From: Mytilus edulis
Lineage: Eukaryota
Assembly: GCF_963676685.1 (NCBI RefSeq)
Contig: NC_092345.1
Coordinates: 61,380,001 to 61,444,000, forward strand
DNA: 64,000 nt
Reading direction: 5' to 3'
A program made the position numbers and the translations under genes. Below are positions 3,649 through 20,473 of this stretch, in pieces. Numbering within the stretch: the stretch's first letter is position 1; each line of letters opens with the position of its first letter. A model generated the notes under the pieces. The model was not told where the DNA came from. It did no database searches and was given only the letters and a program-made list of their open reading frames with translations.

Positions 3649-4681
3649 TTTTTATACGCCCGTCAAAATTTTGACGGGACGTATTATGGTATACAAATGT
3701 CCGGTGTCCGTCCGTCTGTCTGTCTGTCTGTCTGTCTGTTCGTCTGTCTGTCCGGCGTAAACATGTTGCACCGTAATTTGAGAACGACTTATCTAAATTT
3801 CATGAAACTTAATATAGTTGTTTTTTATGATGATCAAATGATCTGTATACTTTTTGGTGAAAATAAGATTAAAACTTTTTGAGTTACGGCGCTTTGTAAC
3901 TAAAACAGGGGTGTGTTTTTTTTCACATGTCGCACCGTATCTCAAAAACGATTCTTGATTATTGCTTAAAACTTTACACACTTCTTAGTTATATTAATCT
4001 TAATATCTGTATACTTTTTGGTGATGATTCAAAATTTCATTTTTGAGTTATTGAGTATTTTGTAAAAAAGGGGGAGGGTTTTTTACATGTCGCGCCGTAT
4101 CTCAAAAACGATTTATGATTATTGCTTAAAACTTTACACACTTCTTTGTTATATTAATCTAAAGATCTGTATACTTTTTGGTGATGATTCAAAATTTTAT
4201 TTTTGAGTTATTGAGTATTTTGTAAAAAAGGGGGAGGGGTTTTTACATGTCGTGCCGTATCTCAAAAACGATTTATAATTATTGCTTAAAACTTTACACA
4301 CTTCTTTGTTATATTAATCTAAAGATCTGTATACTTTTTGGTGATGACTCAAAATTTTATTTTTGAGTTAGTTGTAAAAAAGGGGAGGGTTTTTTTACAT
4401 GTCGCGCCGTATCTCAAAAACAATTTATGATTATTGGTTGAAACTGTACACACTTCTTTGTTATATTAATCTAAAGATCTGTATACTTTTTGGTTTGATT
4501 CAAAATTTATTTTAGTGATATTTGTAAAAAAAAAAACAGGGGGGGGGGTCACATGTCCCGCCGTGTCTCAAAAGCAATAAATGGTAATTGCTTAAAACTT
4601 TCTCAGGCACTATTTATGATTATTGCATAAAACTTCCACACAAGACGTCGGGCGTATCATGCGCTCATGGCGCAGCTGTTT
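3649..4681 (+). mobile_element. Non-autonomous Helentron/DINE-1-like element with internal ~160-bp tandem array
   Basis: 5' TTTTTATACGCCCGTC with palindrome CCCGTCAAAATTTTGACGGG; (GTCT/GTCC)n microsatellite; repeat unit ACATGTCGC.CCGTATCTC at 3925, 4085, 4245, 4397, 4551; 3' GGGCGTAT inverted copy plus hairpin TGCGC-TCATG-GCGCA; T-rich flanks. Confidence 0.8.
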
Positions 4682-11270: not shown

Positions 11271-11623
11271 ATTCATTATATAAAAAAACTATTTCAAATG
11301 TGATTATAAAATCACATATCCTTCCCTTACTACCTGTTATTTTTATTAAACAAAAATGTCTTTGATATCTATATAACCATGAAGTGTAAGACGTACAATT
11401 ACTTTATAAGACCTACAATAATGTAAAATCCAGATTACAAAAACACTCAGGTAAAAACAATTCTTTAGATATGTCAAAAGTTTGTCAGTTATAGGAAGAA
11501 TTAAATGAAGGTCTTTTACAGTTACTACTCAAGGAATGAATATATAATTGATGTGAGTAAAACAACGTGGAAATTAAAATTATTTCGTATATCATTAGAT
11601 TTTATGAAAATCTTAAGTCCAAA

Positions 11624-12189
11624 TATTCTGGATCACATACGCAACTGTATTTACTATAAAGTCTATTGGATTGAATTTTCAGACATTCATATTTTCCGGA
11701 AATAATCTGGACTTATCCGTATTTTCACTACCGTTTACTTTCTCTTCCTCACCTGTCTATTGCAAATGGATGCCACGACAAATCTGCTCCTGTGGATATT
11801 GTGACAAATCACCGTCAAGTACGTTTCAAATCGATTATAAACTGTTAAATATATATACCGTTAATTCCGTTAACTTGAATTCCACGTTTATTCAACAAAT
11901 ACGAACTGTAATTGTTTATTTCTATGAATTGACCTGAGAATTCTACTTTCGTTTTTGACTTGATATTATTATTGCATTGAACATTCATATATTTCTTTCG
12001 TACATATTGTAAAGTATTGTATTTTTATTTCTTTCAGTTTACCAAACAATACACACTCTGTAAAAACTCCTGTACCAATTCTGGTGGAATTATAATCTAC
12101 AATCTTCACACACAAGTTGTTATTCTTTATAATTTGCCGAGATTGCGATACAGTCCCATGGTTATACTAGCTGAGTCAGGCTCAGCATA
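11624..12189 (+). repeat. 5' LTR (566 bp, TATTCTG...CAGCATA)
   Basis: Direct repeat of 18996-19561 with no differences seen by eye; boundaries fixed by the TSD and PPT. Confidence 0.95.
11819..12037 (+). other. Predicted 219-nt GT-AG intron inside the LTR (copy at 19191-19409)
   Basis: Donor AA|GTACGT at 11818/11819; strong acceptor TTTTTATTTCTTTCAG| ending at 12037; removal creates an 11-nt complement of the PBS. Confidence 0.7.
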
Positions 12190-12200
12190 GTAAATTGACG
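12190..12200 (+). promoter_or_regulatory. Non-tRNA primer-binding site GTAAATTGACG
   Basis: Abuts the 5' LTR; lacks the TGG that pairs with tRNA CCA; reverse complement CGTCAATTTAC equals 11813-11818 joined to 12038-12042. Confidence 0.75.
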
Positions 12201-12329
12201 ACAACCTGTCTTTACATATCCAGACAAGGAACGACAACGTAGCAACGTACATACGTACATACCTTTACACTGACAGTGGACTACATATCTTGTGTGAACT
12301 CGACAGCAACCCAACAACGTTGAGTCAAC

Positions 12330-15300
12330 ATGGATCCCAGTCATGTAGAACAACAAGAAGAGATTCAGCCCCAAGAAGGAGATGTCCCTGAACTATTAGA
12401 AAATCCGTCTAATACATCACAGTCAGATGAAACTCCCGAGGCTAGGCGAGTACGTGACCTCACGGAAAAAGGACAAGGGGCTTTCACTGAAAAACGTGAC
12501 AAGTTCTGTCAGGAACTAGAGGCTCTCTGGGCAGACATTGAATCCCAGTTATTGGAAGTAATAACGCCTCCTAACGATCTCCAGCAACTCCTAACAGTCC
12601 AGGACAAACTTGTTAAAGCCTGTAATAATTATCGTAGGCTCACAGATGAATACCTAGACTTTCTGAAAAGGACCCGAACATTGGAGAGTCAAAAAGAAAT
12701 TGATGCATGTAAACTCTCTTTGGATTTACGTCTGTCCAAAGTGGAGCTAGTTATGGAAAAACTACACGAGCATCGCCTCGCTCTAACAAAGGCCAAATCC
12801 ACTAAAACAAAGACCTCAAGGGGTAAGAAAACCTCTCACAGCGGTAGCTCTAACGTGTCAGACATGTCAAGCCTGGCACGGAGAAAGCGAGCCAAGGCAG
12901 AGGCTGCAAAGTCTAAGATAGCATTTGTCGAAAAACATGCCCTTATCCTACAACAGGAAGCAATGTTAGAAGAACAAGCCCTGTTCAGACAAAATGAAAT
13001 GGAACAGGAAGCAGCACGCAAAAAAGCTGAAATGGAACAGGAAGCAGCACACAAAAAGGCTGAAATGGAACAGGAAGCCAGTCGTAAACAGGCAGAAATG
13101 GAACAAGAAGTCGCTCAACGTAAACATGAGGCCGCACAGAGAACAGTTCAGCTAGAACAGGAGGCTGCTCACAGAAAAGTGCAATTAGAACAAGAGGCCG
13201 CTCACAGAAAAACGCAATTAGAACAAGAAGCTATGCGCAGGAAGGCTCAAATGCAACAAGAAGCCGCACGAGTAAGCCGGGAAAAGGCCGAGCTTAAAGC
13301 CAAATTTAACCTTATTGAAGCACAAAGAGAAGCTGCAGCCGCAGAAGCCGAGGCTCGTATCCTGGAATACGATGATAGCCAAGCGTATAGCGATCTCCCT
13401 GACGAAAAGGAAGACCCGCTCCAGCGTGTGCAAGATTTCGTCAATAAACTTCCTGTATCAACTGTTGTTAAGGAAGTAACAGGACCTCAAAAGAAAAAAC
13501 AAATTCCTGTTAAGATCGAGCTGAGTCACGAAGCACCAGCGTTCGTGCCATCCGTGGCATCGAACTTGCTGTCACAGACATCTGCCGTCTTGCCTTCCGA
13601 TAAGTCACCGGAAGTTACCTTTATCCCAGATCTGGGATTAGTAACCGGCATACAAAAACTAGGTCTTTCAGATGAGAGCCCTACTGAACACCAAAAACAG
13701 GGTGTTAAAGAAGCGATCCCTGTCTTACGCACAAAACAAGACGTTATAGAAGAGATCCCTGTTTCGCACAAAAAACAAGACGTAATAGAAGAGATCCCTG
13801 TTGCACACCAGCAACAAATCAACCTTACATCAGAGATAACTAGATTCCTCTTACGCAAGGACCTGCTTTTCTCCCGATTAACAAGCTTTAACGATCGGGC
13901 AGAATCCTTTCATACTTGGAAAGCAAGCTTCAAGAACGTGACTGATGAGTTACAAGTCTCTGACTCAGAACAGATCGATTTACTGATCAAGTGGCTCGGT
14001 CCAGAGTCTGCTAAACACGCCATTAGCATAAGAGCGTCGAACGCCAATAATCCTTCAATAGGTATACAGAGACTATGGAAGAGGCTTGACGAGCGGTATG
14101 GTGCTCCAGAAATGTTGGAAGCCTCTCTCATGAGTAAACTTGCCAAATTCCCTACATTGACGAATAAGGACAACGCACGTCTCTACGAACTATCAGAAAT
14201 AGAATATCACAAGGAAAATCCCAAGCTGGGATGTTTGCTAGCATACTTTGACTCTTCGTCCGGGATAAATCCAATTGTTGAAAAATTACCGTACGGACTC
14301 CAAGAAAAGTGGACAACGAGGGCTACAAGATACAAGTCTAAATATGAAGTTGCCTTTCCACCTTTCACAGAATTCTCTGCCTTCATCAGGGAAATAAGCA
14401 AAACAAAGAACGATCCTGGGTTCATCTTTGGGTCAAAAGTCACACCAAATACAAAAGGTGCTGCGCCAAGGTCTACGTCTTACCCTAAGACTAAAGTTGG
14501 TGCTCATAAAACAGCAGTTGAGCAGCAATCTGGTGAAGCCAGCAAACAAGGTCTTTGTATTCTGCACAATACAAAGCATTCCTTAAATGAATGTCGAGCG
14601 TTCCGAGCCAAGTCAATAGAGGAGCGCAAAGGTCTTTTGAAAGAAAACAATGTATGTTACAAGTGTTGTGATTCTACCACACACAGGAGCCGGGAATGCA
14701 ATGCACGCATAAGTTGTAAAGAATGTGGAAGTAAACAACACACTACCGCACTTCACATCACTAGACCACAGCAACCTGCAAGTTCTCAATCTAGCCCGCT
14801 TAAGCAAGCCTACGGCGGGGAGCCTATAGAATCGGCTGAAACTAAGGCAACCTCAGTTAACTCTACCTGTACTGAGATCTGCAAAGATACATATAGCGGG
14901 AAATCTTGTGCTAAAATACTGCCTGTGAATGTTTATCACAAAGATAACCAGGACAAAGTTATTCGCATGTACGCCATCATTGATGACCAAAGCAACCGGT
15001 CACTAGCATCGCCCGAATTCTTTAATCTTTTCGACGTCAAAAATAAACCGGAGAACTATACTTTATCAACATGCTCCGGCAAAGTAGTCACCTCCGGGAA
15101 AAGAGGAAGAGGTTTCATCATGGAATCAATCAACTGTAATGACAAGTTTGACCTTCCTGTACTGATTGAATGTGATCATATTCCAAATAATAGGGAAGAA
15201 ATACCTACTCCTGAAGTAACAATGCATCACCCTCATTTAAAAGAACTTAGGGGTAGCATTCCACCTATAGAGAAAAATTGGCAAATTCTTCTCTTAATTG

Positions 15301-18300
15301 GCAGAGACCTTATAGAGGCACACCATGTCCTCGACCAGCGCATAGGACCATCCAGAACTCCATATGCACAACAATTGAAACTTGGTTGGGTAGTGATAGG
15401 AGAAACCTGCATTAACAAGCAGCATGTTCCTCTTGAGTTAAATGTTAAAATAACCAACATTTTACCTACAGGACAACCTTCAACCTTTCAACCATGCACA
15501 AGCCAGTTTGACATCCGGGAAAACTACACAGACCCTGTAACGAAAGATTTACAATCGCCACTCTTTGAAAAAACAAGGGACGATGATAAGCCTGGACAGT
15601 CATATGAGGACAAAATGTTCATGAAACAGATGGACAACGAATTTGTCAGAGACTCGAAAGGAAGTTGGGTAGCACCGTTACCGTTCCGAGTGCCAAGACA
15701 GCCATTGCCAAGCAACAGACCCCAGGCTCTTCACCGTGCTAACATGTTAGACGCCAGTCTGAATAGAAACCCAGTGAAGCGGGAACATTTTCTTACTTTT
15801 ATGAGTAAAATCTTAGATAATAATCATGCAGAGCTCGCTCCACCATTGCACGAACATGAGGAGTGCTGGTATTTGCCATTGTTTGGTGTTTACCATCCGA
15901 AGAAACCCGATCAGATAAGAGGTGTGTTTGATTCTTCCGCCAAATGTAACGGAGTTTCACTTAACAGCGTCCTGCTTACAGGTCCAGACTTGACCAATGA
16001 TCTCTTGGGAGTATTGCTGCGTTTCAGGAAAGAAATGGTCGCAGTTACTGCAGACGTTCAACATATGTTTCACTGCTTTGTTGTCAGAAAAGACCACCGT
16101 AATTATCTGAGATTTTTATGGCATAAAGACAATGACCTACAGAAGAACCTTGTCGAATACCGCATGAGAGTTCATGTTTTCGGAAATAGTCCGTCACCTG
16201 CCGTTGCTACGCTTGGACTCAGAAAAGCAGCTCAAGCATCAGAACAAGAGTTTGGCAGTCACGTGACTAGCTTTGTTACAAGAGACTTCTATGTCGACGA
16301 CGGTCTAACGTCATGTCCTACTAAAGAGGAAGCTGTTAAGCTCATGAAGGATACACAGCAAGCATTAGCAAAATATGGAAACTTACGCCTTCACAAGTTT
16401 GCCTCTAATTGTGCGGAAGTTATGTCTGCATTTCATGCCAGTGATTTGGCTTCAAATCTTAAAGATCTAGACTTAGAATGCGACAGCAAACCCCTACAAC
16501 GTAGTCTTGGTCTCAGCTGGGACGTAAACACTGATAACGTCTTATTTCAATTATCATCAGAAAACAAACCGATCACTCGGAGAGGAATTTTATCAACGAT
16601 AAACAGTCTCTACGATCCTCTGGGATTTTTGGCTCCGGTGATTATACAAGGGAAACTCCTATTAAGGAAAATAGTATCAGAAACCGTCGATTGGGACCAA
16701 CCTCTCACTGATGAGACAGCAGATGAGTGGAAATCTTGGAGAGATACTCTTATTGCTATCGAAACATTGCGCATTCCACGTACCTACGTGCCGTATCTTA
16801 GCAAAACCACCACAAAAGAGTTACATGTCTTCTCTGATGCATCAGAAAAAGCCATAGCAGCTGTTGCATATCTACGCACGACCGATAGTAGTGGTGAACC
16901 AAACATAGGTTTCATTCTTGGGAAAGCTAAAGTTGCACCAACAAGTGGTCATACTATTCCACGCCTTGAACTATCTGCTGCAGTATTAGCAGTCGAGATA
17001 ACACAGACCATCATGGATAATTTAGATTTACATATAGACACCGTAAAATTCTACACAGACAGTAAAGTAGTCCTAGGCTACATCAGTAACGAGACAAGAA
17101 GGTTCTTTATCTATGTCGCCAATAGAGTAGAGAAAATAAGAAAATTTAGCTCTCCAAGTCAATGGAATTATGTACCAACTAACCGTAATCCCGCAGACTT
17201 GGGAACAAGGTCCGTACCTGCTCACGAAATTCATAGCAGCGAATGGTTATTAGGACCAAGACAACTTCTTTTCTCAGAACAAAAGAATTCTGAGGACATA
17301 TATCAGCTAATAGACCCAGAGGAAGATGGAGAAATACGTGCAACTGTTAATGTTGCAAAAACATTTGCCACACTTGAGCATAAAGGTATCGGAACTGATA
17401 GATTCAACAGATTCTCCAACTGGACATCACTTGTGCGAGCGATAGCCTTTTTGGAACGTTTCTCCCGTTTACACGGGTCTAAACAGACAGCACCAGTGAC
17501 TTCTCTGGAAGGCTTTTCGAATGCCGAAAATTTCATCTTAATATCTGCTCAATATGAAGTTTATGGAGATGAAATAGATTGCATTAAACGTCAGGAACAA
17601 ATTCATAAGCGGAGTCCGATAGCTAACCTTAATCCGTTTTTGGACAAACAAGGACTATTACGAGTAGGAGGCCGTATCGCCAAATCTGACTTAAACCTCC
17701 GTGAAAAGAAACCATTGATCGTCCCTGGACGCCATCATATAGCGACATTATTAGTTCGACACTACCACAACAAGATAAAACATCAAGGTCGCCATTTCAC
17801 AGATGGAGCGATTCGATCCGCAGGATTTTGGATCGTAGGAGCAAAACGCTTGATCTCATCTATTATTCACAAATGTGTGACATGCCGCAAACTCAGAGGA
17901 AAAACCGAGTATCAAATCATGTCTGATTTGCCAGAGGACCGTCTTGAACCTTCACCTCCGTTTACTAACGTTGGAATAGACACCTTTGGACCCTGGACAA
18001 TTGTTTCACGTAAAACACGTGGTGGATACGCTAACTCAAAGCGTTGGGCAATTTTATTCACATGCTTAGTGACAAGAGCTATTCACATCGAATTAATCGA
18101 GGAAATGAGTTCTTCAGCCTTCATAAACGCTGTCAGGAGATTCACCGCTATAAGAGGCCAAGTTAAGATTTTCCGATCTGACCGTGGAACGAACTTTATC
18201 GGCGCAATCGACGATTTAAAGATTGACTCAATCAACGTTGAAGATGGACCCTTCAATAACTTTCTGTATAATTCTGGTACAACTTGGATCTTCAATCCGC

Positions 18301-18902
18301 CGCATTCGTCCCACATGGGTGGAGCCTGGGAAAGAATGATTGGTATCACTAGGAGAATTCTTGATTCTATGCTTCTTAACGCAGCCGGAAGAAGCCTAAC
18401 ACATGACGTGCTCAACACACTAATGGCAGAAGTTTCAGCAATAGTGAACTCTAGACCTCTGGTACCGGTATCAACAGATCCAGAGAATCCGTTAATATTA
18501 ACTCCGGCTATGTTATTGGCGCAGAAAACCGACTACATTTTCACTTCAGACCATCTTGGGGAATTCGACAAACGAGATCTCTGTCTTGCCGAATGGAGAC
18601 GAGTACAGGCTCTAGCCAGTGTTTTCTGGTCCCGTTGGAGGAAGGAGTACCTGCCGTTACTACAACAACGACGAAAATGGACCGAAGATCGCCGTGATCT
18701 CATCGAAGGAGACGTCATTCTTCTAAAGGACAAAAACATTTGCCGTACGCAATGGCCCGTTGGAATTATAGTGAACTCTTTTAAAAGTTCAGACGAACAT
18801 GTCCGAAAAGCAGAAGTGCGAGTAATCGTTAATGGAAAAGCCACAACCTACACACGCCCTATCGTGGACATGATTCTTCTCATAGAGAACAAACCTGTGT
18901 AA
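12330..18902 (+). CDS. BEL/Pao Gag-Pol polyprotein, 2190 aa
   Basis: Uninterrupted ORF. Three Cys/His knuckles (CILHNTKHSLNEC, CYKCCDSTTHRSREC, CKECGSKQHTTALH; ~14557-14756); aspartic protease IIDDQS (~14980); RT FYVDD (~16290); RNase H VFSDAS...TIPRLEL; integrase H..H/CVTC with GIDTFGP, SDRGTNF, WERMI; PR-RT-RH-IN order typical of BEL/Pao; no env. Confidence 0.97.
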   Translation: MDPSHVEQQEEIQPQEGDVPELLENPSNTSQSDETPEARRVRDLTEKGQGAFTEKRDKFCQELEALWADIESQLLEVITPPNDLQQLLTVQDKLVKACNNYRRLTDEYLDFLKRTRTLESQKEIDACKLSLDLRLSKVELVMEKLHEHRLALTKAKSTKTKTSRGKKTSHSGSSNVSDMSSLARRKRAKAEAAKSKIAFVEKHALILQQEAMLEEQALFRQNEMEQEAARKKAEMEQEAAHKKAEMEQEASRKQAEMEQEVAQRKHEAAQRTVQLEQEAAHRKVQLEQEAAHRKTQLEQEAMRRKAQMQQEAARVSREKAELKAKFNLIEAQREAAAAEAEARILEYDDSQAYSDLPDEKEDPLQRVQDFVNKLPVSTVVKEVTGPQKKKQIPVKIELSHEAPAFVPSVASNLLSQTSAVLPSDKSPEVTFIPDLGLVTGIQKLGLSDESPTEHQKQGVKEAIPVLRTKQDVIEEIPVSHKKQDVIEEIPVAHQQQINLTSEITRFLLRKDLLFSRLTSFNDRAESFHTWKASFKNVTDELQVSDSEQIDLLIKWLGPESAKHAISIRASNANNPSIGIQRLWKRLDERYGAPEMLEASLMSKLAKFPTLTNKDNARLYELSEIEYHKENPKLGCLLAYFDSSSGINPIVEKLPYGLQEKWTTRATRYKSKYEVAFPPFTEFSAFIREISKTKNDPGFIFGSKVTPNTKGAAPRSTSYPKTKVGAHKTAVEQQSGEASKQGLCILHNTKHSLNECRAFRAKSIEERKGLLKENNVCYKCCDSTTHRSRECNARISCKECGSKQHTTALHITRPQQPASSQSSPLKQAYGGEPIESAETKATSVNSTCTEICKDTYSGKSCAKILPVNVYHKDNQDKVIRMYAIIDDQSNRSLASPEFFNLFDVKNKPENYTLSTCSGKVVTSGKRGRGFIMESINCNDKFDLPVLIECDHIPNNREEIPTPEVTMHHPHLKELRGSIPPIEKNWQILLLIGRDLIEAHHVLDQRIGPSRTPYAQQLKLGWVVIGETCINKQHVPLELNVKITNILPTGQPSTFQPCTSQFDIRENYTDPVTKDLQSPLFEKTRDDDKPGQSYEDKMFMKQMDNEFVRDSKGSWVAPLPFRVPRQPLPSNRPQALHRANMLDASLNRNPVKREHFLTFMSKILDNNHAELAPPLHEHEECWYLPLFGVYHPKKPDQIRGVFDSSAKCNGVSLNSVLLTGPDLTNDLLGVLLRFRKEMVAVTADVQHMFHCFVVRKDHRNYLRFLWHKDNDLQKNLVEYRMRVHVFGNSPSPAVATLGLRKAAQASEQEFGSHVTSFVTRDFYVDDGLTSCPTKEEAVKLMKDTQQALAKYGNLRLHKFASNCAEVMSAFHASDLASNLKDLDLECDSKPLQRSLGLSWDVNTDNVLFQLSSENKPITRRGILSTINSLYDPLGFLAPVIIQGKLLLRKIVSETVDWDQPLTDETADEWKSWRDTLIAIETLRIPRTYVPYLSKTTTKELHVFSDASEKAIAAVAYLRTTDSSGEPNIGFILGKAKVAPTSGHTIPRLELSAAVLAVEITQTIMDNLDLHIDTVKFYTDSKVVLGYISNETRRFFIYVANRVEKIRKFSSPSQWNYVPTNRNPADLGTRSVPAHEIHSSEWLLGPRQLLFSEQKNSEDIYQLIDPEEDGEIRATVNVAKTFATLEHKGIGTDRFNRFSNWTSLVRAIAFLERFSRLHGSKQTAPVTSLEGFSNAENFILISAQYEVYGDEIDCIKRQEQIHKRSPIANLNPFLDKQGLLRVGGRIAKSDLNLREKKPLIVPGRHHIATLLVRHYHNKIKHQGRHFTDGAIRSAGFWIVGAKRLISSIIHKCVTCRKLRGKTEYQIMSDLPEDRLEPSPPFTNVGIDTFGPWTIVSRKTRGGYANSKRWAILFTCLVTRAIHIELIEEMSSSAFINAVRRFTAIRGQVKIFRSDRGTNFIGAIDDLKIDSINVEDGPFNNFLYNSGTTWIFNPPHSSHMGGAWERMIGITRRILDSMLLNAAGRSLTHDVLNTLMAEVSAIVNSRPLVPVSTDPENPLILTPAMLLAQKTDYIFTSDHLGEFDKRDLCLAEWRRVQALASVFWSRWRKEYLPLLQQRRKWTEDRRDLIEGDVILLKDKNICRTQWPVGIIVNSFKSSDEHVRKAEVRVIVNGKATTYTRPIVDMILLIENKPV
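12996..13270 (+). repeat. Coding 33-nt (11-aa) tandem repeat in Gag
   Basis: EMEQEAARKKA / EMEQEAAHKKA / QLEQEAAHRKV-type units, about 8 copies. Confidence 0.9.
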
Positions 18903-18985
18903 TTATATGTATATATTTTGGATTAATATAGTGACATTCACATTTGGAATTATACTTTCTGGAATAGTGATATCAGGTAGATTTC

Positions 18986-18995
18986 AGACGGGGAG
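18986..18995 (+). promoter_or_regulatory. Polypurine tract
   Basis: AGACGGGGAG immediately before the 3' LTR start. Confidence 0.85.
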
Positions 18996-19561
18996 TATTC
19001 TGGATCACATACGCAACTGTATTTACTATAAAGTCTATTGGATTGAATTTTCAGACATTCATATTTTCCGGAAATAATCTGGACTTATCCGTATTTTCAC
19101 TACCGTTTACTTTCTCTTCCTCACCTGTCTATTGCAAATGGATGCCACGACAAATCTGCTCCTGTGGATATTGTGACAAATCACCGTCAAGTACGTTTCA
19201 AATCGATTATAAACTGTTAAATATATATACCGTTAATTCCGTTAACTTGAATTCCACGTTTATTCAACAAATACGAACTGTAATTGTTTATTTCTATGAA
19301 TTGACCTGAGAATTCTACTTTCGTTTTTGACTTGATATTATTATTGCATTGAACATTCATATATTTCTTTCGTACATATTGTAAAGTATTGTATTTTTAT
19401 TTCTTTCAGTTTACCAAACAATACACACTCTGTAAAAACTCCTGTACCAATTCTGGTGGAATTATAATCTACAATCTTCACACACAAGTTGTTATTCTTT
19501 ATAATTTGCCGAGATTGCGATACAGTCCCATGGTTATACTAGCTGAGTCAGGCTCAGCATA
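18996..19561 (+). repeat. 3' LTR (566 bp)
   Basis: Copy of 11624-12189, followed by TSD CCAAA. Confidence 0.95.
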
Positions 19562-20473
19562 CCAAATGATTTTTTTGTGCGAATTTTGTCACTTCGTCTG
19601 GCAAACCTTTTCAAAAGAAGATATCTGCATTATAACGTTCAGACGATATTCTCTATAAACCCATCCATAATTCTATTTTTTCAAATTATCAAAGATCTTG
19701 TTAAATATTTTTTAATGTGTCAAAAGAGAGATTTTTTTTTTAAATAATCCTGAAATTATTATTCTCTTTTTATTAGCTCCAATGATAATCCTTTGTGACT
19801 TTTTATATAATTTTGATTTTTATTTTGCTCATTATATTTATACAATCACAAAATGTCTTGTTGCACTTTATTTCTGCTAGTACAGTGTACACTTAAATGA
19901 ATAATTTTTTGGTGTAATATTTTATAATTCAGAACATTCCATGGAATTGGTTGGCTTTTAAATTCACCATTGTCTCTAAAAATATTTTTCGTGGCCGTGC
20001 TGTCTTAAAAAGTAAATACCGTTTAATTGGAGTTGTTCTGTTTGTATAAACAAATGTCGTTTAAGCATAGTTCGTTTCTTTCAATGGTATTTTTTTTAAT
20101 TGATAAAAAAGATAATTGTTCATTGATCCGTTTGATTGCAGTTTACACACGGTCAATTTGTTCAGTAGTAAAGATTTCATTATTTTTTTTTTCAATATAT
20201 TTTTTAGCAAAGCTTTCGTACGTTGCAGTTCTGTGTTACAAAAAAAGAAAAGATGTTTTGTAATAATTTTTAGACACATCTTGTTTCATGAATTCTTCAG
20301 AATTGAAGTGCGATTGAAGGTTTTTTACAGTATTTTTTGTTAACCCTTGTTTATATATTGACTGAATTTTTACCTCATCGAGGAAATATTTCACTTTATA
20401 CGGTCTGTACTATCTACGACAAAAACTTTTTTCTTGACGTCTTTTTTTTTTTGCATCAATTTTAATGCTTGCT

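Follow-up and report, generated by a model that had tools for sequence, protein, structure and literature searches.

A young BEL/Pao retrotransposon of the mussel Mytilus edulis seems to start its own reverse transcription with a piece of its own RNA, which matches the start site only after an intron in the long terminal repeat (LTR) is spliced out. The 11 nt located right after its 5' LTR are the exact reverse complement of the exon-exon junction (6+5 nt) of a 219-nt GT-AG intron inside the LTR. Many related elements are built the same way, although the ICTV profile of this family names host tRNAs as the primers (PMC8742986). RNA contigs with the joined form, co-varying junctions and primer sites in other families, and genomic copies that we read as replication fossils support this interpretation well, while the cut that would free the 3'-OH of the primer is inferred by analogy with Tf1. 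We found no published description of a primer assembled by splicing.

Results

The element and its primer-binding site

The window, i.e., the whole 64,000-nt stretch analysed (NC_092345.1, positions 61,380,001 to 61,444,000, forward strand), contains one complete LTR retrotransposon at 11624-19561, and no other element was found in it. The 5' LTR (11624-12189) and the 3' LTR (18996-19561) are 566 nt long and 100% identical, and they are flanked by the 5-bp target-site duplication CCAAA (11619-11623 and 19562-19566). A polypurine tract (18986-18995) abuts the 3' LTR. A single Gag-Pol ORF of 2190 aa on the forward strand (12330-18902) carries the Pao-type domain PF05380 (E 9e-50) and PF18701, and 2027 homologues have the same Pfam pair. 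The closest proteins come from Mytilus species. Pol proteins 75% identical in a shrimp (Palaemon carinicauda) and 71% identical in a nemertean (Tubulanus) are closer to the mussel element than oyster or scallop relatives are, which may reflect horizontal transfer, and BEL/Pao polyproteins deposited as proteins of a bacterial MAG (Sedimenticola sp.) are most likely host-animal contamination of the bin. More than 40 copies at 94-100% identity are listed in the genome. The window also contains a 160-nt tandem array of five units (3755-4550) and a 188-nt repeat present three times (23835, 35008, 46581) at a spacing of about 11.2-11.6 kb.

The preliminary description proposed that splicing assembles the primer, and all of its coordinates proved right. 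CGTCAA (11813-11818) forms the end of exon 1, the intron (11819-12037) begins with GTACGT and ends in a long pyrimidine run plus AG, and TTTAC (12038-12042) forms the start of exon 2. The joined 11-mer is the exact reverse complement of the primer-binding site at 12190-12200, and pairing does not extend on either side. Since the LTR edges are fixed independently by the identical LTRs and the target duplication, 12190 is the first base after the LTR. The 3' LTR carries a second copy of the intron at 19191-19409. No contiguous copy of the 11-mer exists elsewhere in the window. In 40,000 first-order Markov LTRs, a contiguous or any GT..AG-split complement of this 11-mer arose in 0.16%, which is less extreme than the 4^-11 given in the preliminary description for uniform composition, but still unlikely.

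The intron is spliced in RNA

To test whether the intron is removed, four RNA runs were compared with 11540-13339. Contigs of a PacBio transcriptome (run X4) and of a metatranscriptome (run X13), which come from different studies, carry the joined form. One contig ends its match at 11818 and runs on with the first 17 bases of exon 2, and contigs in both runs enter at 12034 preceded by the last bases of exon 1. The joined contigs extend at least 9 nt upstream of the pairing segment. Unspliced contigs are present as well. Two raw-read runs (X22 and X23) gave only 36 and 51 reads, too few to show joints or RNA ends. Because RNA libraries can contain DNA, the two exon halves were searched separately in the genome, and in all 22 LTRs where both halves were listed they lie 217-219 nt apart, and none is adjacent. 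In addition, one X4 contig shares the LTR up to 11820 and then continues for more than 255 nt with unrelated sequence, possibly representing another LTR family sharing U3 and exon 1, or an alternative joint.

Junction and primer site co-vary between families

Within the family of this element (family A), the donor, acceptor, junction halves and the 50 nt after the LTR are practically invariant in 24 copies (the CGTCAA segment in 23 of 24), and covariation inside the family is therefore uninformative. A loose end in X13 led to a second family of the same genome, family B. Its LTR is homologous to that of family A and has an intron at the homologous place, but exon 1 ends differently and exon 2 starts three bases earlier. 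The 11 bases after the B LTR differ from those of A at four positions, and they are the exact complement of B's own 3+8 junction. The edge of the B LTR is confirmed by its own 5-bp duplication, and a motif search found the same LTR end followed by that 11-mer at 11 of 13 distinct B loci. Family B also has a duplicated leader (loci L044:2490-2640 and L045:2404-2530). After its own site come about 100-125 nt that end like an LTR terminus, followed by a relic of the family A site and A-like leader, which suggests a recombinant origin; many copies have the last base of the relic changed.

A profile of 14 polyproteins retrieved 80 BEL/Pao contigs from metagenomes, and the 1.6 kb upstream of each ORF was scanned for introns with a good donor and a pyrimidine-rich acceptor whose junction-spanning sequence has its reverse complement downstream. 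The strict scan gave 24 hits against 6 in a reversed-sequence control. Of 82 loci, 15 have a junction complement of at least 11 nt within their own last 300 nt of leader, whereas permuting the leaders among loci gave a mean of 0.65 and a maximum of 2. A looser scan is too noisy to be used alone, since its control gives many hits, and only hits with good splice sites and an LTR-end context were kept. Read by eye, it brings the total to at least 17 different junction/site pairs, with duplexes 10-16 nt long that take 2-9 nt from exon 1 and 5-9 nt from exon 2. Examples, given as locus, first intron base, first exon-2 base and first site base, are L046 776/950/1044, L056 2522/2612/2728, L057 133/240/354, L059 345/445/553, L066 523/694/855, L069 4183/4281/4420, L093 1900/2086/2184, L116 1201/1277/1394 and L118 2120/2244/2298. 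In L066 the 5' LTR is replaced, upstream of exon 1 (400-530), by unrelated sequence with CCAAT and TATA boxes ending 14 nt before the donor, which may be a promoter swap or an assembly join. Where both LTRs are on the contig, the pairing starts at the independently defined LTR end (L063, L064, L092) or 3 nt after it (L116), and no primer site whose LTR end is independently defined starts with TGG. Positive families lie in every major clade of an RT tree of 73 rows, and many negatives simply lack a complete 5' LTR on the contig. A contiguous complement is rare. It is found in an intron-less derivative (L083) and in two short-LTR families (L101 and L105, about 210 nt) without an intron, in which a contiguous 9-11-nt complement matches the bases 2-4 nt after the LTR; they look like plain Tf1-type self-primers within BEL/Pao.

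Intron-less LTRs and a putative primer fossil

Three families hold LTR copies in DNA that lack exactly the predicted intron, namely L031 in family B, L083 compared with L064/L066, and the 3' LTR of L063 compared with L067. These copies indicate that the sites are used in vivo and that spliced RNA is sometimes copied into new LTRs. However, L063 (1-330 and 6900-7105), with the intron in the 5' LTR and none in a 3' LTR only 88% alike, may be a chimeric assembly or a recombinant, and was not used for the mechanism. Intron-less progeny are rare, amounting to one LTR among more than 200 B LTR candidates.

Using L031 as a natural contiguous reference for the B junction, we found a second kind of fossil, inferred from coordinates only. 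An element lies on the minus strand of contig C8 of this genome, with LTRs near 38529246 and 38523088 and a Pol hit between them. The pattern made of the LTR end plus the site puts the last LTR base at 38528887, and the 118-nt reference (110 nt of exon 1 plus the first 8 nt of exon 2) matches 38528769-38528886 on the opposite strand over its whole length, at 97%. This copy therefore appears to carry, directly after its 5' LTR, at least 118 nt complementary to the spliced leader and ending at the LTR edge. Longer references no longer list it, so the copy ends 110 to about 122 nt upstream of the junction, where an initiator-like TCA sits about 25 nt after a TATA-like motif. In the whole genome the contiguous B junction occurs only at these two places. 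This is what is expected if plus-strand strong-stop synthesis once copied the entire RNA primer, from its 3' end at the LTR edge to its capped 5' end.

Anatomy of the leader

TATA-box positions give no consistent transcription start across families, and the end of the fossil was used instead. By homology to it, transcription of family A is inferred to start at about 11727-11739, where an initiator-like TCA lies. This fits the step in RNA contig depth between the bins 11660-11719 and 11720-11779. Exon 1 (to 11818) would then be about 90 nt long. The stretch 12043-12189, inferred to be the rest of R plus U5, is what minus-strand strong-stop DNA would copy. In 15 of 19 related families a canonical poly(A) signal lies in this stretch between the acceptor and the primer-binding site, 11-41 nt after the acceptor in 12 of them, and it is almost never in the intron; none is canonical in the family A element. 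The order is therefore pairing segment, rest of R with the poly(A) signal, U5 and site, as in Tf1, with an exon 1 and an intron added upstream. The junction-to-site duplex is in the predicted minimum-energy fold of the spliced leader in 10 of 18 families, and in family A all 11 of 11 pairs are present, with a mean pair probability of 0.94.

Discussion

Our data suggest that the element is a young, transcribed BEL/Pao retrotransposon that primes minus-strand DNA synthesis with its own 5' leader, not with a tRNA, and we consider this the likely explanation. Every test suggested in the preliminary description that could be run came out in favour. In the model, transcription starts in the LTR at about 11727 and the intron is spliced out in a fraction of transcripts, creating the 11-nt sequence that pairs with 12190-12200. 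By analogy with Tf1, the RT/RNase H of the element would cut after the last paired base, C12042, and the capped leader fragment of about 97 nt would prime copying of 12189 back to 12043. The strong-stop DNA would then jump to the matching exon-2 stretch at the 3' end of the RNA and run on through the unspliced 3' LTR, restoring the intron in the progeny. The RNase H-type cut, and the claim of the preliminary description that only cap-proximal spliced RNA can prime, remain inference. If the primer site is re-copied from the primer in each cycle, junction and site would stay complementary as families diverge, which would explain the clean covariation. If the 3' copy is spliced as well, intron-less LTRs result, and if plus-strand synthesis reads on through the whole primer, the complement of the leader is left behind the LTR; we take the rare genomic copies of both kinds as such products. 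The model does not explain why the identical intron in the 3' LTR stays unspliced in templates, and its primer would carry a 5' tail of about 90 nt, unlike the 11-nt primer of Tf1, and it is unclear how normal plus-strand transfer copes with that. One speculative idea is that weak splicing partitions transcripts into capped mRNAs and cleaved, self-primed templates.

Alternatively, the same primer might act in trans. A short, spliced, polyadenylated RNA made from the LTR alone may anneal to the primer site of a fully unspliced genomic RNA, so that the template never has to be spliced. This would explain simply why progeny keep the intron. The poly(A) signal in exon 2 of most families fits this possibility, as does the RNA contig depth over exon 1 and exon 2, which is several times that of the internal region. 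However, contig depth is a poor measure, a cut would still be needed to give the 3' end at 12042, nothing shows that such an RNA is packaged, and the predicted cis fold is stable. This alternative is possible but tentative. It is unlikely that the pairing is only a regulatory RNA structure, masking the site in spliced RNA or circularising the leader, with something else as the true primer. Long-range leader pairings exist in retroviruses, and the priming step itself was not observed here, but the pairing begins at the LTR edge, which is set by the 3' end of the primer, no TGG-type site is present, and the inferred copy of the whole spliced leader on C8 is not predicted by a purely structural role. 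Coincidence in this element, with priming by a host tRNA fragment or small RNA ending in the same 11 nt, is very unlikely, although the host tRNA set was not screened and the single element alone gives a P of only about 0.002, because at least 17 families with different sites each match their own splice junction and the window has no tRNA gene.

Self-priming is established for Tf1 and predicted for Tf1/sushi, Tcn1 and TAR lineages (PMC6317226). As in Tf1/Tf2, the primer site of the mussel element is complementary to its own leader, the duplex is about 11 nt and no tRNA is needed in the model. Here, however, the complementary segment does not exist in the DNA or in the primary transcript but is created by splicing, and the primer would not be the extreme 5' end of the mRNA but would end about 97 nt into the spliced RNA. 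In addition, the elements are BEL/Pao, not Ty3/gypsy chromoviruses. The tRNA-primed BEL/Pao elements described by ICTV (PMC8742986), and, for example, Achilles of the olive fly with its tRNA-Tyr site (PMC4580426), share the Gag-Pol with the Pao-type domain, LTRs, a polypurine tract and a 5-bp duplication. The ICTV profile gives an 18-nt site complementary to the 3' end of a host tRNA, whereas the site of the mussel element is 11 nt, does not start with TGG and matches its own spliced RNA, although the host tRNA set itself was not screened. In copia/Ty5-type priming by an internal tRNA fragment (PMC6317226), the primer 3' end is also made by RNA processing and the site does not start with TGG, but that primer is a host tRNA half, while here the site differs between families and tracks the junction of each family. 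The main survey of BEL/Pao does not discuss primer sites or introns (PMC3118150).

More broadly, we consider it somewhat more likely than not that, across much of BEL/Pao diversity in marine invertebrates, the primer of reverse transcription is the element's own capped leader, made competent only when the spliceosome removes an intron from the LTR. Splicing would then be the switch that decides which transcripts stay mRNAs and which become self-primed templates or primers, and the primer site would be rewritten from the spliced RNA in every cycle.

The replication of BEL/Pao elements is described as poorly understood, and they are assumed to use tRNA primers (PMC8742986). A primer that exists only after splicing would be a third way of priming LTR-element reverse transcription, beside host tRNAs and Tf1-type 5'-end self-priming. 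It would explain why tRNA-based primer-site finders fail on many invertebrate LTR elements, and would give annotation tools a new signature. Intron-less LTRs and read-through copies of the primer would offer natural fossils from which primer ends and transcription starts can be read in genomes alone. It would also tie retrotransposition directly to the host spliceosome.
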